From the NCBI GenBank assembly GCA_965649825.1, contig OZ287702.1, positions 372,001 through 436,000 on the forward strand: a DNA stretch of 64,000 nt, in the 5' to 3' direction. Under the pieces are notes generated by a model, which saw only the letters and a list, made by a program, of their open reading frames with translations, was not told the DNA's origin and did no database searches. The stretch is from Penicillus capitatus. Its lineage: Eukaryota; Plantae; Chlorophyta. Each line of letters opens with the position of its first letter. The stretch's first letter is position 1. Position numbers and translations under genes: made by a program. Below are positions 34,612 through 55,470 of the stretch, piece by piece.

Positions 34612-35367
34612 ATGAGCCATCACATCATCGCCATGTCACAGAAGGCAGCCACAGCTGTCGATAGCCATGACTTCGTCCGAATGCGCCTCAATGTCGCCCG
34701 ATCAACGCAGGCGACGCGGCGCGTGGTTTCCCTCAGTCGAACAGCGCCACAGGGCGTCGCATCTTCGGTGTCGCGTCGGAAGGCGTTGTTGGGTGTCCTC
34801 TCATCGCCTTTGATCGTATCGCTGTGGAATCGAAGCGAAGCGGCGGAGCTCGAGACGTTCTACGGCAAAGCGACACCACCAACGAGCTACGGCGGTTACG
34901 GCGGCAACGCCGAGGAGGTACCCAAATACAAATTCGACTATCCGGTCAACTGGACCTTCCAACCCGTAAACAAAGTCCAGAAAGGGACGCAAGGAATCGA
35001 TGCCCGAGTGTCCAATCCACGCAATCGAAACATGGCAGCCTTCGTTATCGTCCTGGGTCGAGCTGGAGAAGACAACAAGTCCTATCAAGTGACCGATGTC
35101 GAAGGCACCTTTCAGGGATTCGCTGGTGCAGACTACGACATTCAAGATGCCGTCATGTCTGCCACGAATACCGCACAGGGAGAGCGCGAAATCGATGGAC
35201 AGCAATACTTTGATTATCAAGTGGACAGTCCAGTGGCGCATTACATGGCGACGATTACGGTGAAGGAGGGTAAAGTCTTTGCCTTCTTTGTCAAATCGCC
35301 CGACAAAGAATTCGAAGCGAACGCGCCAGTGTTCAAGAACATCCTCCAGTCGTTCAGAACGCTATAG
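34612..35367 (+). CDS. TL19: Thylakoid lumenal 19 kDa PsbP/Mog1-fold protein with Tat signal, intronless
   Basis: SRRKALLG twin-Arg, AEA cleavage, FYGKATPPTSYGGYGGN..YDYP-like KFDYP..NKVQKGTQG; the second ATG at 34633 is also possible. Confidence 0.85.
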   Translation: MSHHIIAMSQKAATAVDSHDFVRMRLNVARSTQATRRVVSLSRTAPQGVASSVSRRKALLGVLSSPLIVSLWNRSEAAELETFYGKATPPTSYGGYGGNAEEVPKYKFDYPVNWTFQPVNKVQKGTQGIDARVSNPRNRNMAAFVIVLGRAGEDNKSYQVTDVEGTFQGFAGADYDIQDAVMSATNTAQGEREIDGQQYFDYQVDSPVAHYMATITVKEGKVFAFFVKSPDKEFEANAPVFKNILQSFRTL

Positions 35368-38254: not shown

Positions 38255-39980
38255 TGCGCCATAAAGACGACCGTTGAATGTATATCTTTCAAATCGAACA
38301 GCGACGATCGCACAGACGTTTGTTAACACATCAATGTCGTTTGTTGGTCCTAGTGACCATTGCGTACGATGACAATGGATGATAGCGTCAGCACAAAACG
38401 GGCTCAACAGCACGAGCCTCCAGAAGTGTTTGTGGGCGGGGTTGGTGCAGTAAGGTCGAATCCGAGGCCGCAGTCAAAGAGACCGTAATGCACGGAGCGG
38501 TCACCGACGACGTCAAAATGCTGAGCCAGCCAACTCATCTTTCCTTCTCCAATCATCGCCGCAGTGTTGCCGCAGACGGGCTTCGGTTTGCCTGTCTCGA
38601 AGCGATGATGATCATCCAGTTTGTAGGCATTCTTGTGACCCTCAATCGTTCCCTGCGCAGACAAACATACATCACACATCTCAACATTCTATGACTCCTA
38701 GAGTCACACACACTTTGTAGGTCGCAATCTGGCCGTAATCCTCACAGAGAGTCTCCATCATGCCGGGCAACTTGAACAATCTACGTCAGACAGTTGGGTT
38801 TCCCACTGAGCGCCCGAGAGAGAGACCTGTAGGTGATGGAGTAGAAACGCGCTTCTCCGACGACATCCAATAGTTCGGGATCTGTCACTTTGATCTCTGA
38901 AGCTGCCAAGACTCGTGCATCCATGAAACCGACATCGGCGGCAATGCGCTTGAAATCCTCGACATATAGTGCCCCAGAAATACACTCTCCCCAGAGAACC
39001 TCATGTTCCTGAACGTGTTTGGGAAGACGGCGATCGCAATAGACATCACTGAAGTAAAACTCTCCTCCCGGAGCCAAAACTCGATAAACCTCTTGCAACA
39101 CGCGTGGCTTGTCAGGTGAGAGATTGACGACGCAGTTGCTGATAACGATGTCCACGGAATGGTCTTCGATCCCAGCCTTGTCCAAGTACTCGATGTGACC
39201 TTGGATGAATTTCATGTTTGGCTGGGTATAGCCCAGTGTCTTGGTGAACTCCTCGAGGTACTTCTCCGAAACCGCCACTTGCTCTTCTGTCATATCAATG
39301 CCAGTGACGAATCCTTTCTCGCCCACAAGGGCAGAACACACATAACAGTCGCGGCCAGATCCGCTGCCGAGGTCGAGAACGCGCAGACCGTCGATGCCCA
39401 ACGGAAGCGGAGCACCGCAGCCGTAGAACTTCGATACGATTTCTCCCGGCACTTGGCGCATGACTTTGACAATGGCCGGATGAGGGGAACCCCCTGCCGT
39501 GCATGCCGTTGTCTTGAGGTCCTTCGATGTGCTCAGGACTTTGCCATAATAGTCTTTGACAACGTCATACGTTTTCGTTTCTTCCAACTGCGACAGTCCC
39601 CCGGCGGCCGCTGTGGTCACGGTGGTTCCATTGGAATGGCTCATTCTGCGAGGCGGTGTGCGATAAGGAGTACGAAGACGGTGCCGATTGGTTGTGAGAG
39701 AACGTAGCGAGGGAAGTATGCGTGATGCTTGAAATCGGAGTTGGCCGCGTCGATGCGGGGCGCGTGATGTGGACATCGTACAAGAGCGGAGCATCTTATG
39801 GTGCACGCTGCGAAAACCAACGGAAAAATCATCTTGCTATCCGTACAGAATATTCGGAGAATGACACGATCAGCATAGACGTCACAGACTCCTCAAGCAA
39901 ATGCGTCCAATCTGGCGCTCTTGGTCATCCTTGATAGACGACATTCGCATTTTAAGGGTCTCCTGCCAACGCGGCGACAT
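38255..39980. repeat. Tandem segmental duplication unit 1 (about 1.7 kb, arsM plus both flanks)
   Basis: Aligns by eye with about 41790..43510 including introns and non-coding flanks; stop-codon offset 3536 bp. Confidence 0.92.
38404..39776 (-). CDS. arsM: Arsenite methyltransferase (ArsM/AS3MT) copy 1, 2 introns, with possible 44-aa N-terminal targeting extension
   Basis: KDYYGKVL..TTAC, FYGCG, LDLGSGSGRD, ISNCVVNL, LWGECISGALY, C-terminal SCC; second ATG at 39644. Confidence 0.94.
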
Positions 39981-41789: not shown

Positions 41790-43510
41790 AGACCATGAAG
41801 ACGACATCCAGTAATCTATCTTTTAAATCGAACAGCGAGGATAACACAGACGTCCGTTTGAATAGGTTAATGCCGTTTGTTGGTCCTAGTGACCATTGCG
41901 TATGATGACAATGGATGATAGCGTGTGCACAAAACGGGCTCAACAGCACGAGCCTCCAGAAGTGTTTGTTGGCGGGGTTGGTGCAGTAAGGTCGAATCCG
42001 AGGCCGTAGTCAAAGAGACCGTAATGCACGGAGCGGTCGCCGACGACGTCAAAATGCTGAGCCAGCCAACTCATGTTTCCTTCTCCAATCATCGCCGCAG
42101 TGTTGCCGCAGACGGGCTTCGGTTTGCCTGTCTCGAAGCGATGATGATCATCCAGTTTGTAGGCATTCTTGTGACCCTCAATTGTTCCCTGCACAGAAAA
42201 ACATACATCACACATCTTATCCATCCATGACCGCTCGAGTCACACACACTTTGTAGGTCGCAATCTGGCCGTAATCTTCACAGAGAGTCTCCATCATGCC
42301 GGGCAACTTGAACAATCTACGTCAGACAGTTGGGTTTCCCACTGAGCACCGAGAGAGAGACCTGTAGGTGATGGAGTAGAAACGCGCTTCTCCGACGACA
42401 TCCAATAGTTCGGGATCTGTCACTTTGATCTCTGAAGCCGACAAGACTCGTGCATCCATGAAACCGACATCGGCGGCAATGCGTTTGAAATCCTCGACAT
42501 ATAGTGCCCCAGAGATGCCTTCTCCCCAGAGAACCTCGTCTTTTTTGAGATGATCTGGTAGACGGCGATCGCAATAAAGATCGCTGAAGTAAAACTCTCC
42601 TCCTGGTGCCAAAACCCGGTAAACCTCTCGCAACACACGTGGCTTGTCGGGGGAGAGATTGACGACGCAGTTGCTGATAACGATGTCCACGGAGTGGCCT
42701 TCGATGCCAGCCTTGTCCAAGTACTCGATGTGGCCTTGGATGAATTTCATGTTTGGCTGGGTATAGCCCAGTGTCTTGGTGAACTCCTCGAGGTACTTCT
42801 CCGAAACCGCCACTTGCTCTTCTGTCATATCAATGCCAGTGACGAATCCTTTCTCGCCCACAAGGGCTGAACACACGTAACAGTCGCGGCCAGATCCGCT
42901 GCCGAGGTCGAGAATGCGCAGACCGTCGATGCCCAAGGGAAACGGAGCACCACAGCCGTAGAACTTCGATACGATTTCTCCCGGCACTTGGCGCATGACT
43001 TTGACAATGGCCGGATGAAAGGAACTCCCCGCCGTGCATGCCGTTGTCTTGAGGTCCTTCGTTGTGCTGAGGACTTTGCCATAATAGTCTTTGACGCCGT
43101 CGTGCGTTTTCGTTTCTTCCAACTGCGACAGTCCACCGGCGGCCGCTGTGGTCACGGCGGTTCCATTGGAATTGCTCATTCTGCGAGGCGGTGTGCGATA
43201 AGGAGCACGGAGACGGTCACGATTTATTGCGAGAGAACTAAGAGGGCAGTACGCGCGATGCTCGAAATCGGAGTTGGCCGCGTCGATGCGAGGCACGTGA
43301 TATGGACGGCGTTCACGAGCGGCGCATCTTACGGTCCACGCCGCGAAAACCAATGGAAAAACATTTCGCTATCCGCACGGGATATTCGGAGAATGACGCA
43401 ACAAACAAAGACGTCACATATTCCTCAAGCAAATGCGTCCAATCTGGCGATCTTGATCATCCTTGATGGACGACATTCACTTTCTGAGGTTCTCTTGCCA
43501 ACGCGGCGAC
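41790..43510. repeat. Tandem segmental duplication unit 2
   Basis: Paralogous to 38255..39980. Confidence 0.92.
41940..43179 (-). CDS. arsM: ArsM/AS3MT paralog copy 2 (catalytic Cys replaced by Gly), 2 introns, ORF intact
   Basis: Same exon structure as copy 1; LWGEGISGALY; no stops or frameshifts in the coding exons. Confidence 0.88.
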
Positions 43511-44671: not shown

Positions 44672-47600
44672 ATGGACAGTCCAAAGAGCGTCAGTTCGAC
44701 GGAAGTGCGTTGTTGTCTATGGCTTTCTGCTTCTGACTTTGGTCTCACAGTCACGCACGCGTGTGGCGTCCTTGGCGAACAAAAGTCGAGAGGAGTTGGA
44801 GAGAATGGTTCAAAGTCTCCTGCGAATGCTGAAGCAACGCGACAAGGAATTGAAAGAGTCGGAGGCAAAGGCCGCGGCCATTTCTGAAGGGTCCACATCT
44901 AAGGAGGCAAACGCGTTTGAGTCAGAACGCCAGACATGGGCAAAAGAAAAGAGCGATCTCCAGGCGGCACATCAGAAAGCATTGTCCGAGAAAGATCAAG
45001 CTCGACAGCACGCTCATGTGCATCTGTCTTATCTATATCACACTATCTCACTCTGTTCAATGACATAGGAAGTATCCTCTCAAATGCAGCAGTTGAAGAA
45101 GCAGTTGACAGACAGCGAGGAGACGGTGAGTGGCGTCATGGGACAGAAGGAGAGTTTGGCACGGCAGCTTAAGGAAGTGCAGGATGAAGGTCAGGCGCTT
45201 CAGCAGCAGGTAGCGACATTGAAAGAAGCTGTCGGTGCCATGATTAAAGAACGTGATGCATCGTTTGCGCGTCTTTCTGAAGAGAAAGAGCATTGTTTGG
45301 AGATGGAATCTCTGCTGTCGACGGCTCAACAGCAACTCATGCAACTGAAAGAAGAGTCATTGTCTCTCCAGACTGAGAGAGATCAACTAGAGAAATGCCG
45401 ACAGGAACTGGTAGCAAGCAAAGAACAGGCTGATGATGAGCTGGAACGCCTCCGCGGAGAGATGACGGAACGAGAACATCGAAGCAAAGAACAGATAGAA
45501 GATCTGTATCGTCAACTGACTGAAGCAAATGATCTTGCTGTCCAGTTACAGAATCAGAAGACTGAAGTGGTCAAACAGCAGGAGGAGCTAAGAGCAGAAC
45601 TGCGATCCCTTACGGAATCCGAAGGGGATCGAAGAGCGGCATGTGAGAGAGTGATAGAGCTGGAGAAGGAAGTCGCCTTGTTAAAAGGTTGTCAAGAGGG
45701 CGGTACTGAAGGTCTGACTGTTCCAGCAGAACTGGCAAAAGAGCTCGAGGAGAGAATCGAGCGATATAAGGAGAACATCCGCCATCTTGAAGACTCCCTA
45801 ACAGCATCGGGGAATCAACTTAAAGAGGAACGCGCCCAGAGAGACACGTTGGAGCGAGAGCAAGAGGGACGAGAAGCTGAACGCAATGCAGCCATGAAGC
45901 AGCTCGAAGAGAAGCTCGAAACGGCAACGAAAGAGTGTGGCGATCTGGAAGAAGTTGTTGTTCGTGCTAAAGCCATGGAGACGGAATGCCGAAGTGCTCT
46001 AGAGCATTGCCAATCAGAGCTGGCATCTGAGAAAGAGGCCGTGGTACAATGGAAGACGACTGCCGAATCGCTGGATCAGCGCATTCAGGAACTCGAATCT
46101 CTGAAGAATGAGAACGTAGAGATGACAGCAAGAGTGCAGGAATTGCAAGAACTTCAGAAAGAGTCGCTTCGACAGAAGGAAGCTGCATCGGAAGAGGAGA
46201 TGACTCTGAGAGAGATGCTGCATCATTCCGAAGAGAGTTTAAAGAATCTGCGAGAAAACCAGTCAGCAGAAAGGGATGCCCAAGTTACCCAAATGAAGGA
46301 ACTCCAGACGGAGCTGAAGAAAACACAGAAGGAATGCTATGTTGCTGAAGATCGTCTCAAGGAGATGGAAACTGAGATCGGTCAATTGAAGGCTGTCCTG
46401 ATGAAGAACGCTTCCAGGCTGGAAGAAGAGACACAGACGCACAGAATTGCAAAGCAGCGATTGAGCGATGAACAGGAAACGACACAGCATCTCCGTCAGC
46501 AACTACAAGAGGCTCTCTCAAAGATACAGTCTTCAGAAGTCGAGACTTGGAAACAGCAAGAAGCTTCAGCTGCCCAACAGAAAGAAAAGGAAGATGCCAA
46601 TCAGAAACGTCAGCAAGAGCTCGAACGAGAGATCTCGAATCTCAAATCTGCCATTGCAGCACGAGAGCAGCAGATTGGTGCACACGAAGAGGATCTCGAA
46701 AAAATACGCGAGGCGGCAGAGGGAGAGAAAGAAAAGCTCAAGCGAGCCATTGTGGAACTCAAGAAGCGACTGGATCGTGCGGCGGCACAGATCAAGAAAA
46801 TGGAACTGGAAGGGACCGAAATGCAAGATGGTCACTTTGCAGAGAAAGAAAGGCTCTCTGCCGAGGTTTCTCATCATCAGCATCAGGCCGAGAAGTTCGG
46901 CACAGAGCTCAAAGACTACAAAGCAAAAGCACATCTCCTTGTCAAGAACAAAGATCAAGAACTGAATGCACTGAGGGCGGAATTGCAGCACAGGGCAGAC
47001 GTGGAAGTAGATCTCAGAGTTCTCCGGGAGCAGTTTGATGATCTGACAGTGGAGAGAGATAACATCCGAGAGGAGCTAACGGAAGCAAACGAGCGATTTC
47101 AGGTGCATCTGGACGATCTGGTGGCCGGGTTTCAAACAGAGATCGACGAAAAGACATCCGCACTGCTGCAGACGCGTTCCGCGAAGGATGCTGTCGCGAC
47201 AGCTGCACAGGAATGGAAAAACAAGGCAGAGCACTTTGAACAGGAGCTCCTTCAAAAGGCACAAGAAATTGCTGTCCTTTCAGCACCGAAACCGTATGAC
47301 CTGTCTTTTTAAGGAGGCCTCGATCGGTGTCTTGTGTAGATCGGTGTCGGAGATAGAGCATGAGAAGGCAGCCCAAACGTGCCGATTGCTTGAGAAGGAG
47401 CTCGAAGATGTAAAGGCTGAGTTTCGCTCATACAAGCAGACGACAGAGCAAATGTCCGAAGTTCAACAGCGAGAGATGTCGCGTCTCATTCAGTCGAATC
47501 TTGAACTGAGAAGGAATATGTCGGAAGACAATGGGTCTGTTCATTCTGATCGGCATTTTTCTGTCGACCAGCGAACGCTGCAACAACACAGCGCCGCCCC

Positions 47601-48171
47601 GTTTGACAATTTTCAGCTTTCTGATCTGCTGGAGGGTCGCGAGACCGGACCATCTTTCAGGATGGATGACGGCGAGAGCCTAACGGAGAGTCAGATCGTG
47701 GTACTGGCTAACAAACAGGCAGAGCGCGAAGATAGAGTCCACCTTCTGCAGAAACAGAACCAGGAGATGCGATCGGAGATCGAAGATTTGGAAAAGGAGT
47801 TGGAGCTGCGCAGAGAACAGGAGCGTGTTTTAAAGAGCTATTTGAGAGAAGCCGATCAGCTAAAGAAACAGCTCGCCGATGCGCCGCCAGCAGATCTGGA
47901 TTTTCCCTATCTGAAAAACACAGTGATGAAGCTCATGACAACAGGAGAGTCCGAAGCACTCCTCCCTGTCTTTGCAAAACTCCTCGATTTCACGGAAGAA
48001 GAGAACGCGTCACTCATAGCCTCCATCCAAGGACGAAAAAAGGTACGAGAGGCGCTTATAGATAACGCACGCATGTCTAAGTTTGTGACTGTCGTTTGGT
48101 AGGCGGCTTCTGAAGAGGCATCGCGATCGAGTGGTTTACTGGCCTCGCTGACAGATTGGTCATGGACTTAA
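44672..48171 (+). CDS. GRIP-domain trans-Golgi golgin
   Basis: About 1000 aa coiled coil ending DFPYLKNTVMKLMTTGESEALLPVFAKLLDFTEEE (GRIP). Confidence 0.88.
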
Positions 48172-49953: not shown

Positions 49954-52900
49954 CTAGATATCTAAATCCAGCGTCCCGATCTGATACTTGGCCAGTGTCC
50001 TAAGCCGCCGTCCTTTCGAGACGCGATCTCCGAGATGGATGGCGGCCTTACCGGTGGGCGGAATCGCTGGTTTCGTGGGCTTCCATGTAGAGGTCGGTGC
50101 CATCTTTGCCGATAATATCTTCGATGTTGTCGAGTCCTCCCGGATGTATTTTCATAAACTGATCCATCTCGTAGATCTTGTCATTGATCACCGTCCAGTT
50201 CTCCCCTTCCTCGACACGGAACTGAAATTCTTCAGGGGTGATATGAAGTAAACCGTCTCCATCCTCTGTCACTGATAGACATGACAAACGAACAGAGGCC
50301 AAAGAAAGAGTCCTTACGCGTCGGGTTTTCGGCTGTTGGCGGAAGCCAATTGTCTGGAATCGTCACCTGTCAACAAGATCGAATGCTTTATCGTCTAGAC
50401 AGCAATATCTAACCGTACTTCGCTCTTTCGGGGTGCAGCTCGAGCCAAGGATGACTTGCGTTGGGCAGAACTCGTCGTCGATCTGCGGAAATTGTTATGG
50501 AATGGAAAAGCAGTCCATTGAGTTACTGCATAGGCGGCGATGTCTGAATGGCGCTTTTCGTGGTGACTTTATCGCCAAAGGATTTTGCAAAAGCAGCTTC
50601 CTCCTGTTTTGCATCTATTCTGTTCTCCGTTACCGGCAGCTGTCTTGTCTTGTCTGAGCTTCGCGGGACGAATAACAGAATTGCCTGCGCTGTCGATTGA
50701 GCAGACCGAATGTCGGCAATAGATTCTGACGATGATCGCGATAGTGAACGCGTAGAACAGTTGAAAGGCGGTGACGCTGGCAGCCAACAGACGCAATGAC
50801 GTCCACACTTGAAAGAAGCCTAGGGCATAGACGGCATAGTCGACGACTCGATTGAGCTTCTTCCATCCAGGAACCCATCGATCTCTGCTGAACGTATTCA
50901 AACTCAGCAAAGCCTGCAGAGGGGATATAAAGAACAAGAGATAGGCGAGCACGCCATGAGCATAATCTGCGTGTCCCTATAACACGTCTGCTCGAATGGA
51001 TGGATTCGAGGAGGGAGCGTGCCTCGGCGTGTGCGAGAGCAATGATTTCGCCGATGAAGACAAACGATGTCGATAGGATCTGCATAAACAGGTGTCCTTT
51101 CCTCCAGTCTCTCCATCCGCGACCAATCCGTTCCGTTAAAGCGGCAGCAACGCCAAAGAGACCGAATCCTGTGCAGGCATCAGTGCCGTTGTCAAAGGAG
51201 GGATCGGCGTTGCGTGGATGACCTATTGCAACGAGCCAGACGTGGGCCAAGAAGATGGTTCTGTTGTCTCTGACGGCGCCGATATCTTTCGAAACGACGC
51301 TGCCGGATTCGAATCTGGCGCCCGTTGGCGTCGGCGCAGGATCCGAAGTTGGCGTCTCCGATGGCTCGCTTGTCGCCGGTTCATCAAAAACCGAGAGATC
51401 TGGCTGGATATCTGTTTTTCCTCGCCTACATCCGCATTCTCCCGTAGTTAAGGACCTGCCGACGCACAAGATGTGCTTACCCCATCGGTCCGTGATATTG
51501 GAGTCCGCCAGTCGTTGAGCTAAAGGCGTAGATGACAGGGATCGTGGCTGGGTCGATATCTCTGTCAGAGCTGTCGCCGGTTTGGAGTTTCCTCTTGAAG
51601 TGCGCTTTCATCGTTTCTCCTTCTACCGTGCAGGTGACATCCATCAGATCGTCTGTTCCGCCATTTGCTGAATCTTCTGTCGGCGCAACAAAACCTGTCG
51701 ACCAATAGTCTCCAACCGTACATCCGCCAGATCCGTCTGCCACTGCGGCGAACACATCCGCATCCATCATGTTCAGACTCGGACCAGGTATGCCTATCGC
51801 TGCGAAACCTTGACCTGTGCAAGCAAGGGAGATAACGGCAGATGTCCAACTGGCAGTAGCGCATACCATTGAAATTTAAATCGAAAGCAATCTCGTCTCG
51901 AAAGAGCTCATACGTCAAAACGAAATCGCCCGAATCCACCAGCTGCACCTCTCCTGTCGTGCTCACGGGTGTCGGCTCCGTCTGTTGAAACACACCCAGT
52001 ATCGAGACTCGTTGGCGACGGTATCGTCAACGTACTGTCGTCGGTTCGGTTGATGTCGGTGTCTCTTCTGTCGTCGTCGGGCTGGACGTGGTCGGCGTGG
52101 TGGACGATGTATCTCCAGGTGGCATCGATGTCCGAGCAGTGACATCAATACGATAGGGCTTCTCTCTGATAACAATTGCAGAAAGAAATCTGCAATACCG
52201 TGTCTATGGTCTCACCGCATCGTAGCCGGATCCACGACGGTCGTCCCTTCATCGTAGACGAAGAGGACGTTCGTATAGCCATCATTGATGAAAGGCCAAT
52301 CAAAGTTGTCTCCTGTATCCAGGCGACGGTTGAGCTGCACATTCAGATAGCCGCCAGTAACATCGCAGAACGAAGAGATGGCGTTATCGACGCCGCCAAG
52401 CGAAATATCGAGCGAAATGTCGGAGGGCGATTCAGCCCAGTAGTCTCGCACGGAACACAAACCGAAGCTATTGGCTGAGATTTTAACGAAATCGGCGCCG
52501 TTCAGTCCTCCTTCCGGTCCTTCCAGTGCAATACCCATCCATGCTGGTCCTTCGACTGCCGACAAAAGATCGCATTTTGCGAAATAGCGTATGAAAGACG
52601 GCCGACGTACGTTGCATTGTCATCGAAGCATCCAACCACTCGATACCCTCGATCGTCTTCGTCTTCCAGGTAAACCTCATGTTCTTCGCCTCATCGATGA
52701 TGATCGAACCGTCGTTCAAATCCGTTCCCGTCTCCGTCGCGACGGGCGTCGTCGTCGTCGGAGAAGCTGGTGACGATGTAAAGGGAGCGAAGAAATCGAT
52801 GGACGCTTTGCCACGACGCAGGGCCCTTTCCAGAAATGGAGACGTTTTCCATGCGTGAAGCATGATCTGTGGTGTTGCTCTTACGAGTGATATTCGAGTT

Positions 52901-55470
52901 GATGTGACGTCGAGTGCCACGCAAAGATCACCGGCGTCTCTCCAGTTTTCCGAATCGATCTGTCGAACGCGTCGTTCGCCTCGACGCTGCGCCGAAACAC
53001 GATCGTCGTCGTTCCGTCGGAATGAGATCCCGAAATGAGCTCGACGTCATTCGTCCCGCCAAGCGACGTGTCGAGCACAGGCGCCGCAAAAGTCTCGGCC
53101 CAATAATCATCAACGACGGCGTTTCCAGCCTCGAACCGAGCAATGGCGATATCTGCCCCCACCATGGCACTCGAGGCATCTACCCAATGGTCCCCTTTTT
53201 TGAGCGCGTCACCAATGATGCGTTTACCTTCTGCCACACCAATGCCGATCCAACCGTCCGTTCGGCACGTTAGTGTGAACGTCAGGTACTCTCGATTTTT
53301 CGAAGTGTCCAATTCCCACGCGACATCGTAGACGCCAGTTTTCAGTTCCTCGCTTGCGGTTGTCGTGGTGACGACGGTATCGGCAGAAGGGGCTACTGTT
53401 ACAGACCCGGATGTCTCTGTCCTTCGCAGAGGCCACGGCTCGTCTGGATTCGAGACATAGATATTCTGTGGCAATGTTTGGATGTTCGTATTCCGCAGGA
53501 TGACATCTCGAAGACCTACAACGCTCATCACGCCTTCACGCCGTGACTTATGTGCGAGAAAACCTGTTCGCCGAATCTCGTTGATCTCGTCTGCAGTGAA
53601 CAGCCCGTTGTTCTCGTTTTCGAAGTAAAATCGATCGCCGTCTCGAATGCGTCTGTATTGGTCGGCCATGGAGGTGTAGAACAGCTCGCCGAGATTGGAC
53701 TCTCCATAGAGATCTTCGGCCAGTCCACCGACGAAAGACTCCACCTAAGAATGCGCCGAGATTGTCTCATTTCCAGAGAGGCGTGCTCAGGCCAACGTTG
53801 TCGACGGTCACGTACACTTCCTCCAGCTGTCTCTGCAGGTAGATATCGGAAGTGATGTCGCTAAAGTCCCGCGCCTGGAGTAGTCCGAGCGCCGAACGCG
53901 CGATGTTGTAGCTCGGTATTCCGTGATCACTGATACGACAGTCATGCGTTTAGTTGCATGTTGGCCTCTTTCCTTACCGTCCACGTTGCACCGTGGTCGC
54001 CAAGAGGTCGCTGCCGCCGAAGGCAGGCACACCGAACAAGTAATTTTGCAACGCGCTTGCAAAATGCGGCGCCACTTCGGTTTGCTGCATAAAAGAGGCA
54101 CCTCTGATCAACGGTTCGATGCCAGCCGATAGTGATTGCGTTGGGAAGAAAAAGGAGTTTTTGAGCAGGATGTAGTCATCGTCGATGTTCATACCGTCAT
54201 CATCCACTCGGGCAATGACATCGTTCACCTCGGCATGACCGTATCGGTAAGAAACCGTCGCAAAGAAATTGTCGACTCCTAAGATCGATCGATCGATCGA
54301 TCGAATGCGAAGAAGTGGACGAAACGCATACCTGGATTGACGGTGCTCTTGTATCCAGCGTAGGGCGCCAGTTGTATGCCGAGAAGCGGAATGTACTCGT
54401 AGTAGCAGATCGACTGCAAGAAAGCGACATTCCACTTTCGAGCCTCTTGATAGATCTCTTCGTCGTTCCACTCGGAATGCTCCGTCGAAATCTTATCGGC
54501 GAGACGATTGTGCTCGCGAACAAAGATCGATTGAAGAGCGAGCAGCACCGGATTGACATTCGCACGAACATCGCCCGCAGCCCTGACGATCGAAAACGAT
54601 CGACGACGGTTGCCGCTGAATCGAGGACACGCACCGCAGTTCGTTATCGGCTTCTCTTCCCGCGGGATTGGCCATCGCGACGCCCATCGTATTCCTCGGC
54701 AGTTCGCCATTGTATATAAGCATCTTCCCTCCATGATGCGTGCGCAGCTTGTCCGCTGTGAGAGCATCCGATCCGTAAACCACACTGCCATCGAGATACG
54801 CCGTAATGGTATTGATCTGGATAACGACAAAGGCATCCTCTATCGACGCATGCGCAACGTATGATCACTACTTGTTGTCGTGCGCCGTCTGCCACTTCTC
54901 CTCTCGAGCGGACCATCGTCAACCACTTCGACGCTGCATTCGCGTCGCTGCATTTTTCTTTGTTGAAATGCATGTCGCAATGTGCGATTTCGATGTCGAT
55001 GTGATTCGTTGGTTCGTCTTCACCCTCAGCCCGCAGATCGATATCGTGATTGAAAAGCTGTCCGATATACGTCAGCATATCCGTCTTGTGCTGGATGTTT
55101 CGTTGCCGGTTACGGTAGGCCGGCAGTGTCAAGCCAAGACTGATCTCACGTGCACTCTTTGTAAAAGCGAACTACAATACTCCGAATCGCACTCACACGT
55201 AAGACATCTCTAACGGCGTTATGCTGGCTTACGTTGATATCACCCGACTCTCCATATCCCGCCGCCACCGGAACCTGCTCGCGTAAGAACAGCTCACCCA
55301 CTGACCTGTCCATACTTCGAATCGTATTCTCGATAGCGAAAGCCGCACCCCCAATTGTCATGAACGAGATTGTTGCCGCGTCCATCATAGGAATAGTAAG
55401 GCACTCCATTCGCCGCAACGACGCCGTAGAGTACGAAAAGAAGGATCCATCTCTCGAGTCGCACACGCAT
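49954..55470 (-). CDS. Multidomain membrane redox protein: signal peptide - animal-type heme peroxidase - DOMON x3 - cytochrome b561-like (5 TM) - cytochrome b5; about 20 short introns
   Basis: MRVRLERWILLFVLYGVVAA signal; YSYDGRGNN, GQLFNHD, TAYLDGSVVYG, GDVRAN, REHNR, YRYGH, FQQ-like YQYRRIRDGDRFYFEN region; three GADxA-type DOMONs; His-bearing TMs; HPGG..EAH. I traced contiguous splice junctions from start to stop. Confidence 0.85.
50977..51022 (-). other. GC-AG intron (46 nt) in the b561 region
   Basis: GAG|GCACGC...TTATAG|GGA; restores the frame to GHADYAHGVLAY while keeping TM2 full length. Confidence 0.7.
54283..54304. repeat. (GATC)5 palindromic microsatellite inside a peroxidase intron
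   Basis: gatcgatcgatcgatcgatcga. Confidence 0.9.

Follow-up and report, generated by a model that had tools for sequence, protein, structure and literature searches.

A 64-kb stretch of genomic DNA from the green alga Penicillus capitatus (contig OZ287702.1, positions 372,001–436,000 of the forward strand; referred to here as the window, and numbered from its first letter) carries a minus-strand gene that is predicted to encode, as a single polypeptide, a type-I multi-heme membrane protein of the plasma membrane or an endomembrane. The protein consists of a signal peptide, a peroxidase domain, three DOMON domains, a membrane domain related to cytochrome b561 and a C-terminal cytochrome b5. 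The gene structure, the domain order, the topology logic, the presence or absence of ligand residues and the conservation of these features in relatives can be read directly from the DNA and the related sequences. Based on this architecture, we see about an even chance that the protein is a working electron wire, in which cytosolic electrons would reduce peroxidase intermediates or external acceptors.

In the unspliced minus strand from 55470 to 49954, open segments alternate between frames, and their translations correspond to peroxidase, DOMON, membrane and b5 sequence. Junction-by-junction removal of short introns, all GT-AG except for one, joins them into one stop-free frame from an ATG at 55470 to a TAG at 49954–49956. 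In the final model, 23 exons are separated by 22 introns of 40–59 nt; the coding sequence amounts to 4413 nt including the stop codon, and the product to 1470 aa (Table 1). The ATG is the first Met downstream of an in-frame stop, and opens a hydrophobic signal sequence. A first model of 1506 aa, with a 31-nt intron 1 and three in-frame introns kept as coding sequence, was ruled out by alignment with relatives; the Pfam domain scan was run on this first model, in which the An_peroxidase match comprises residues 25–526. With intron 1 assigned to 55348–55306 (43 nt), the conserved N-terminus 'WG..GE.LR..VP.A.Y' is regained, and the peroxidase part of the final model aligns with the Cymbomonas protein P0007 over residues 25–549 at 45% identity and without large gaps.

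The three in-frame introns contain no stop codon and are visible through homology only, each appearing in the alignments as an insertion of 16–18 residues that is private to the window protein. The intron near the C-terminus of the peroxidase domain accounts for the sole private insertion of at least 14 aa outside the low-complexity linkers, and once it is removed 'EIRRTGLRDVILRNT' agrees with the relatives. At the place of the intron in DOMON1, Bryopsis also has an intron, and at the position and phase of the intron in the first transmembrane (TM) helix, a syntenic orthologue (locus L005, described below) has a 39-nt GT-AG intron of unrelated sequence. A gene finder run without homology, or mechanical reading of open reading frames (ORFs), would translate through all three introns and add 16–18 spurious residues at each. 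The intron between TM2 and TM3 is taken as GC-AG since no GT donor joins both frames without loss of TM2, and an exon boundary in L005 coincides with it. Within the 5′ part, the junction of intron 2 is the least certain; an alternative donor, GTAAGC at 55232, was rejected because it would remove the loop that precedes the 'SAREIS' motif in homologues. The exons of the cytosolic linker, which include two micro-exons (exons 20 and 21), are also weak. Separately, the donor GTAAGA of the intron at 52884–52826 overlaps an in-frame TAA (52884–52882) directly after DOMON1, and a possible consequence of retaining this intron is a secreted peroxidase-DOMON isoform of 716 aa.

The An_peroxidase profile (PF03098) matches at E = 1e-115 over profile positions 1–510 of 530, which assigns the domain to the peroxidase-cyclooxygenase superfamily. 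The best matches among solved structures are 8s6c (4.9e-80) and Dictyostelium peroxinectin A (PDB code 6erc; 1.2e-78), followed by lactoperoxidases (~1e-53) and DUOX1 (6wxr; 3.3e-46). Distal Gln110 and His114 ('GQLFNHD'), Arg239 ('GDVRAN') and proximal His331 ('YRYGH') are all present, and His114, Arg239 and His331 align with the equivalent residues of 8s6c and 6erc. These two enzymes are, however, soluble single-domain proteins, and they retain the Glu of the 'RxNE' motif, 8s6c also the Asp of 'DHD'. In the window protein, these Asp and Glu residues, which form the ester links to heme in lactoperoxidase-type enzymes, are replaced by Asn113 and Val242, and Thr412 takes the place of Asn in the conserved '..N-I-Q-R-G-R-D-H-G' motif. 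Substitution of the Glu by Val or Met is common to the inspected relatives from Bryopsis (both paralogues), Cymbomonas and Chlorokybus and to the EukProt protein g480.t1, while replacement of the Asp is specific to the subtype of the window protein, with Lys at this position in Bryopsis. The domain is predicted to hold a full set of catalytic residues and to bind heme non-covalently.

The Pfam DOMON profile (PF03351) matches in three stretches (3.1e-43), which are separated by Thr/Pro/Ser-rich spacers. A profile of these units identifies the DOMON domain of dopamine β-hydroxylase (4zel; 5.3e-10) as its sole match in the PDB, with no sequence-level match to cellobiose dehydrogenase. To distinguish heme-type domains we looked for a Met in the 'M-x-G/D-x-D' stretch together with a C-terminal His, ligand identity being taken from PMC10784544 and PMC10691727. 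In the cytochrome domain of cellobiose dehydrogenase, heme is coordinated by this Met/His pair, which recurs as a conserved feature of the DOMON domains of animal CYBDOM proteins (PMC10784544, PMC10691727); it has also been modeled as the heme site of Arabidopsis HYP1 (PMC10784544). By this measure, DOMON1 and DOMON3 are predicted to be heme-competent and DOMON2 heme-less. The orthologous DOMON domain in Bryopsis shows the same ligand loss as DOMON2 (Phe and no His), and the heme-free DOMON domain of dopamine β-hydroxylase has a Leu at the same position as Leu805. DOMON3 ends about 50 residues ahead of TM1, and lies directly upstream of the membrane domain on its non-cytosolic side.

Hydropathy reveals four strong hydrophobic helices in the membrane domain, and a weaker fifth helix (TM4) was placed by homology. 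The Pfam profile Cytochrom_B561 (PF03188) does not match the membrane domain of the window protein on its own when scanned at E ≤ 10; the orthologue in Bryopsis scores 16.6 bits and the paralogues 26–34 bits, the cut-off being 23. A profile constructed from the window protein and 13 relatives does, when searched against the PDB, retrieve Arabidopsis CYB561B (4o6y; 2.8e-9) and human Dcytb (5zle; 1.2e-4), with the four b561 heme-histidine positions of the family and the structures in register. At the family level, the core is hence best assigned as a cytochrome b561 in the CYBDOM orientation.

The window protein itself retains three of the four histidines, i.e., the outer heme pair His1155 and His1217, and His1187, which alone is left of the cytosolic pair. 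The fourth is Asn1252, and the near-invariant Gly four residues on is Asp1256; all 13 of the other aligned relatives keep the His. The four b561 histidines have been called universally conserved, with the second and fourth ligating the cytosolic heme (PMC10691727, PMC10784544). To check Asn1252, the contiguous exon ORF 50572–50976 was searched against 1.8 billion representative proteins. Three ORFs from other read sets (P0248, P0249 and P0250) share the N…D motif, as WKKLNRVID, WKKLNRTLD and WKKFNRILD, and two further matches, one of them from Ostreobium, have the canonical His and Gly. The syntenic orthologue L005 also carries WKKFNRILD. The same motif in four independent related sequences rules out a sequencing error, and identifies the substitution as a conserved feature of one clade. 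Another trait of this region is the dipeptide 'GH', located shortly ahead of the third b561 His in the outer loop (protein positions 1211–1217, approximately 50976–50956), which occurs in the window protein (EGHADYAH) and in L005 (KGHLEYAH), both members of the His→Asn clade, and is lacking in the Bryopsis orthologue.

The cytochrome b5 profile (PF00173) is matched over all of its 74 positions, with His1425 (HPGG) and His1448 (EAH) present; like the An_peroxidase and DOMON matches, this one is well outside what chance would give. Ahead of the domain, its exon offers no separate start codon. The FAD_binding_6 and NAD_binding_1 domains, which follow b5 in full-length members of the family, are missing from the window gene. 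With respect to topology, the peroxidase behind a signal peptide must be external and the NAD(P)H module of the relatives cytosolic, which places the N-terminus outside and, after five helices, b5 inside, and suggests that electrons would most likely flow from the inside to the outside.

An earlier note on this DNA, made without database searches, had proposed most of this architecture, and its claims of one spliced ORF for a single polypeptide, of the peroxidase motifs GQLFNHD, GDVRAN and YRYGH, of a C-terminal b5 with HPGG…EAH, and of an outward N-terminus with a cytosolic b5 domain agree with our results: the frame is continuous over all 22 junctions, the residues and the b5 profile are found, and the topology logic and the relatives' NAD(P)H module support the orientation. 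Two claims stand in part. There are five TM helices with b561-type histidines, but only three of the four; and there are three DOMON domains, but DOMON2 lacks both heme ligands.

Table 1 Positions of the gene and of its parts in the window. Exon coordinates are given from high to low; residue numbers refer to the final 1470-aa model.
Feature	Position	Strand	Basis or remark
Exons 1–6	55470-55349, 55305-55197, 55156-54872, 54816-54635, 54582-54332, 54278-53978	minus	
Exons 7–12	53929-53797, 53744-53564, 53515-53228, 53179-52885, 52825-52611, 52555-52216	minus	
Exons 13–18	52165-52036, 51981-51867, 51814-51481, 51425-51223, 51168-51023, 50976-50731	minus	
Exons 19–23	50684-50527, 50482-50419, 50366-50318, 50271-50052, 49999-49954	minus	
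Signal peptide, residues 1–21, MRVRLERWILLFVLYGVVAAN	55408..55470	minus	Hydrophobic N-terminal segment; cleavage site inferred
Peroxidase-cyclooxygenase-superfamily domain, residues ~25–545	53445..55398	minus	Pfam PF03098
In-frame stop-free intron, 48 nt, GTTTTC...TTGTAG	53516..53563	minus	Near C-terminus of peroxidase domain
DOMON1, residues ~575–722	52807..53357	minus	Met623 and His715 as candidate heme ligands
In-frame stop-free intron, 48 nt, GTAAAC...GGGTAG	53180..53227	minus	Within DOMON1; window-private insertion in DOMON alignment
DOMON2, residues ~765–905	52153..52680	minus	Leu805 at Met position; no His at 'YHG' position
DOMON3, residues ~955–1098	51413..51951	minus	Met998 and His1090 as candidate heme ligands
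Five-helix membrane domain, divergent cytochrome b561 core, residues 1149–1300	50661..51262	minus	Alignment, hydropathy
In-frame stop-free intron, 54 nt	51169..51222	minus	Within TM1; removal gives the helix length of all relatives
Probable GC-AG intron, 46 nt	50977..51022	minus	Between TM2 and TM3
Asn1252 (AAT, 50853-50851) to Asp1256 (GAC, 50841-50839), 'KKLNRVVD'	50839..50853	minus	Replaces 'KLHRxxG'
Cytosolic low-complexity linker, residues 1301–1389	50252..50660	minus	Short exons; least certain part of model
Cytochrome b5 domain, residues 1390–1470	49957..50251	minus	Pfam PF00173, 5.1e-13; stop directly after

The same order of peroxidase, DOMON repeats, b561-type core and b5 is kept in relatives. 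With the first model as query, two proteins cover 93% of its length in one polypeptide: P0002, i.e., BSKO_01713 of Bryopsis sp. KO-2023 (34% identity, 93% coverage), and P0003, i.e., g480.t1 of EukProt. Further relatives are three Cymbomonas proteins (among them P0014, CYMTET_50709), one from Chlorokybus, and one from the chytrid Nowakowskiella; those from Scenedesmus/Tetradesmus and Edaphochlamys have a peroxidase-DOMON-b561 organization. Judging from its identifier, one more relative is presumably from Cyanophora. Five of the relatives (P0002, P0003, P0014, P0057 and P0092) continue after b5 with FAD_binding_6 and NAD_binding_1, that is, with a b5-reductase module. In P0057 (Logan SRR28720672_15213), all six domain types are contained in one uninterrupted ORF of 1352 aa on a 5.3-kb contig, and since this ORF is intron-free, the fusion in that organism does not depend on any splicing assumption. 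Full members would thus encode a path from NAD(P)H through FAD, b5, b561 and DOMON to peroxidase in one chain. When JGI metagenome contigs were searched with the last 716 aa of the protein, 27 pattern matches came up, none of which was confirmed.

As far as the sequences tell, the green-lineage family falls into two paralogous types, reductase-bearing and b5-terminal, and the window protein belongs to the latter together with its orthologue in Bryopsis (locus L001; BSYQ01000025.1, 3373–16389), a locus different from that of P0002. The peroxidase exons of L001 are 50–61% identical to the window gene, and four DOMON domains follow its first. L001 is annotated as two models on the same strand, 245 bp apart, one of 604 aa with An_peroxidase and DOMON and one of 887 aa (BSKO_14163; P0121) that extends from DOMON to Cyt-b5. 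Although its DOMON domains must be extracellular, the second model has no signal peptide at its start; we therefore take the split for an annotation artefact, and L001 is probably one gene. The syntenic orthologue L005 (Logan SRR33785045) covers the region from DOMON3 to the stop codon and terminates at the same point after b5 as the window gene; its identity with the window protein is 66% in DOMON3, 44–55% in the membrane domain, 48% in b5 and 29% in the linker.

From these features we infer which hemes are occupied, the direction of electron flow, the donor, the acceptor and the physiological role. In the proposed scheme, a separate cytosolic enzyme of the NADH-cytochrome b5 reductase type would reduce the b5 domain, and electrons would pass over the membrane by way of the b561 core. 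DOMON3 and then DOMON1 would accept them, acting as tethered mobile cytochromes in the manner of the cytochrome domain of cellobiose dehydrogenase, and the electrons would finally reach the peroxidase heme or external one-electron acceptors. In the former case, re-reduction of Compound I/II would be the most plausible reaction. The outcome would be a peroxide reductase powered from the cytosol, or a peroxidase under the control of the redox state of the cytosol. As an alternative end of the path, external Fe(III) or radicals could be reduced at the DOMON domains. Either end fits better than an oxidase of the Duox kind.

Peroxidase Compound I/II (~+1 V) readily accepts electrons from hemes of the b561 and DOMON types, whereas O2 (~−0.16 to −0.33 V) is reduced by them only poorly. 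The potentials reported for b561, AIR12 and CYBDOM hemes range from −29 to +190 mV (PMC12723747); at such mid-to-positive values, reduction of O2 is a poor fit and reduction of Compound I/II a better one. Transport from the cytosol to the outside has been observed for the CYBDOM protein HYP1 in oocytes, where mutation of the outer His pair abolishes activity (PMC10784544), and it is this pair that is intact in the window protein.

Several observations weigh against a working wire, and leave three uncertain links in the window protein: from the donor to b5, from b5 into the membrane, and past DOMON2. Concerning the first, the window shows no b5-reductase FAD/NAD module in a tblastn search with the C-termini of five relatives (best E 0.16), there is no flavin reductase module downstream of the L005 orthologue, and no redox partner gene adjoins the window gene. 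At the second link, the conserved Asn1252 and Asp1256 make the canonical step from b5 to a cytosolic heme doubtful, and if that heme is absent, b5 and the outer heme probably lie too far apart for electrons to tunnel quickly. At the third, the absence of heme ligands from DOMON2 means that transfer from DOMON3 to DOMON1 hangs on geometry. Finally, the peroxidase of the Bryopsis orthologue lacks the proximal His ('EYSQS' for 'YRYGH') and has 'KHD' as its distal motif. This loss indicates that redox sites drift within the b5-terminal subtype, and the peroxidase-like domain of L001 may be heme-less, as in mammalian DUOX.

Tentatively, and as a less probable proposition than the wire itself, the family as a whole might be a self-contained trans-membrane redox machine in which cytosolic NAD(P)H drives an extracellular peroxidase, and in which the b5 heme of the window's clade replaces the cytosolic heme of b561. 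The net result would then be that peroxide is reduced, or that the chemistry of the peroxidase at the cell surface is gated by redox state. Such a takeover of the cytosolic-heme role by the b5 heme would explain the conserved changes of His to Asn and of Gly to Asp.

Comparison with known systems points to the CYBDOM proteins (Arabidopsis HYP1 and CRR, animal SDR2/FRRS1 and Drosophila CG8399) as the closest in design. In common with these, the window protein has an extracellular DOMON domain of the Met/His type upstream of a b561 core, a first b561 helix that carries the first His, and an intact outer His pair. It differs in its N-terminal peroxidase, in having three DOMON domains of which one is heme-less, and in its cytosolic b5, fused to a protein of a kind that otherwise takes ascorbate as donor; furthermore, Asn stands in for the fourth His, described as 'universally conserved' (PMC10691727), and PF03188 does not recognise the window copy. 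DUOX1/2 likewise combine an N-terminal extracellular peroxidase-homology domain with a cytosol-fed trans-membrane electron module in one chain. In contrast to DUOX and NOX, the membrane module of the window protein is of the b561 type and not a six-helix ferric-reductase domain, and DOMON cytochromes lie between membrane and peroxidase, with expected heme potentials that disfavour O2 reduction. The Pfam scan of the window protein accordingly detected no ferric-reductase, FAD/NADPH or EF-hand domain, and the module of the relatives is a b5 plus b5-reductase cassette rather than a NOX dehydrogenase. Cellobiose dehydrogenase (PMC10691727, PMC10784544) has a DOMON-fold domain with Met/His-ligated b heme on a flexible tether that serves as a single-electron shuttle, which the heme-competent DOMON domains of the window protein would resemble; unlike the window protein it is soluble, draws electrons from its own flavin domain and donates them to LPMO. 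A separate family is formed by the FRE+DOMON proteins known from Naegleria and oomycetes (PMC3591440). By analogy, the window protein would work most like a CYBDOM with a new input (b5) and a new output (peroxidase), DUOX being merely analogous.

Full-text literature searches returned no paper on the peroxidase-DOMON-b561-b5 architecture, in line with the earlier note, which knew of no characterisation. Since public databases list the relatives as hypothetical proteins, the architecture has been seen but not studied. The CYBDOM analogy drawn in that note holds up well, given the match of the family membrane profile to 4o6y and the Met/His pairs of DOMON1 and DOMON3. Its trans-membrane wire gains from the NAD(P)H/FAD module of the relatives and loses from the missing reductase, Asn1252 and the heme-less DOMON2 of the window protein. 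O2 as an electron acceptor is a poor fit for the potentials quoted above, and halide oxidation is argued against by Asn113 and Val242, with which the domain departs from the covalent-heme halide-oxidising peroxidases of the LPO, MPO, EPO and peroxidasin type.

A rather unlikely alternative is that the wire is broken or repurposed, trans-membrane transfer having been lost and the protein serving as a membrane-anchored extracellular peroxidase or an adhesion protein. DOMON2 would then be a possible carbohydrate binder, and b561 and b5 would be kept for folding, for heme or redox sensing or for other binding. Much of what was said against the wire speaks for this explanation, i.e., the changes of His and Gly in the cytosolic heme pocket kept in four related sequences, the loss of Met and His from DOMON2 in Bryopsis as well, the lack of a reductase module and the loss of the proximal peroxidase His in Bryopsis. 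To these may be added that the window membrane domain falls under every Pfam b561 threshold, and that some DOMON domains of other proteins bind sugars and not heme (Iyer et al. 2007, cited by PMC10784544). However, seven other non-peroxidase candidate heme ligands are retained (two in b5, three in b561, and the Met/His of DOMON1 and DOMON3), those of the C-terminal half in L005 too, and b5 would have no obvious role if electrons did not move. Moreover, the N…D motif is itself strictly conserved (WKK[LF]NRxxD), which indicates selected function and not decay.

We regard it as unlikely that the protein is an oxidant generator comparable to Duox, in which O2 would be reduced to superoxide or H2O2 at the DOMON or peroxidase hemes, and the peroxidase would cross-link the wall or a wound plug or oxidise halides. 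Oxidative wound responses have been described for some siphonous algae, the (bryopsidalean) type to which this alga belongs. The pairing of an external peroxidase with a membrane electron module parallels DUOX, DUOX1 is among the PDB matches of the peroxidase domain, and full-length relatives own an NAD(P)H/FAD module. Against this, the window gene has no flavin module, the ester-link Asp and Glu are replaced, and relatives are also found in unicellular algae and in a chytrid, so that a role confined to the wound biology of siphonous algae does not fit the family. NOX hemes have far more negative potentials than those of the b561/DOMON type. The reported b561 and DOMON range (PMC12723747) lies well above the O2/superoxide couple.

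That the locus consists of separate genes arranged head to tail, such as one for a secreted peroxidase-DOMON protein and one for a DOMON-b561-b5 membrane protein, would fit the two-model annotation in Bryopsis and the TAA reached on intron retention after DOMON1, but is highly improbable in view of the unbroken frame, the second Bryopsis model without a signal peptide despite its extracellular DOMON domains, the lack of an in-frame Met with signal sequence at the matching place in the window, and the single-protein relatives P0002, P0003 and, free of introns, P0057.

The gene is flanked by a gene for a tRNA-binding-domain protein downstream and an ankyrin-repeat gene upstream. Elsewhere in the window, the segment 24566–48887 is collinear, at 84–88% DNA identity, with two contigs of ENA ERZ26696514 (ctg303836 and ctg300066; 4.08 Mb and 101 kb), which are probably haplotigs of one assembly. 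The gene calls on these contigs are prokaryote-style ORF fragments, and spliced genes of that alga are for this reason missing from protein collections. A single-exon gene on the plus strand (34612–35367) encodes a PsbP-family thylakoid-lumen protein with 93% identity to the ENA relative, 67% to EukProt g8258.t1, 57% to Bryopsis and 56% to Ostreobium, which together with the synteny places the source among green algae allied to the Bryopsidales. On the minus strand, 38781–39806 and 42322–43353 are two tandem copies of a gene for a S-adenosylmethionine-dependent methyltransferase (Methyltransf_31, 1e-29), which may be arsenite-methyltransferase-like; the syntenic contigs of two related algae (the ENA contigs and L005) have one copy, so the duplication is recent and local. 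At 45084–48102 on the plus strand, a long coiled-coil ORF (742 aa, no Pfam match) precedes a second ORF whose C-terminus bears a GRIP domain; the two are probably one golgin-type gene, and the position of this locus is conserved in relatives.

Trans-plasma-membrane electron transport is known from two modules, the ferric-reductase domains of the NOX/FRE type and the ascorbate-fed b561/CYBDOM proteins. The present family would be a third solution, a b561/DOMON wire that is fed by b5 and, in full members, by a b5 reductase, that leads into a heme peroxidase and that carries as many as about eight cofactors per polypeptide. If the chain works, it would provide a compact system for studying multi-heme trans-membrane transfer, the coupling of a peroxidase to NAD(P)H and the roles of DOMON cytochromes. 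If it does not, the protein would be a case of repurposed redox domains, for which mammalian DUOX with its peroxidase-homology domain is a precedent. With a b561 ligand conservedly absent next to a fused b5, the clade offers a natural test of whether b561 can do without its cytosolic heme.

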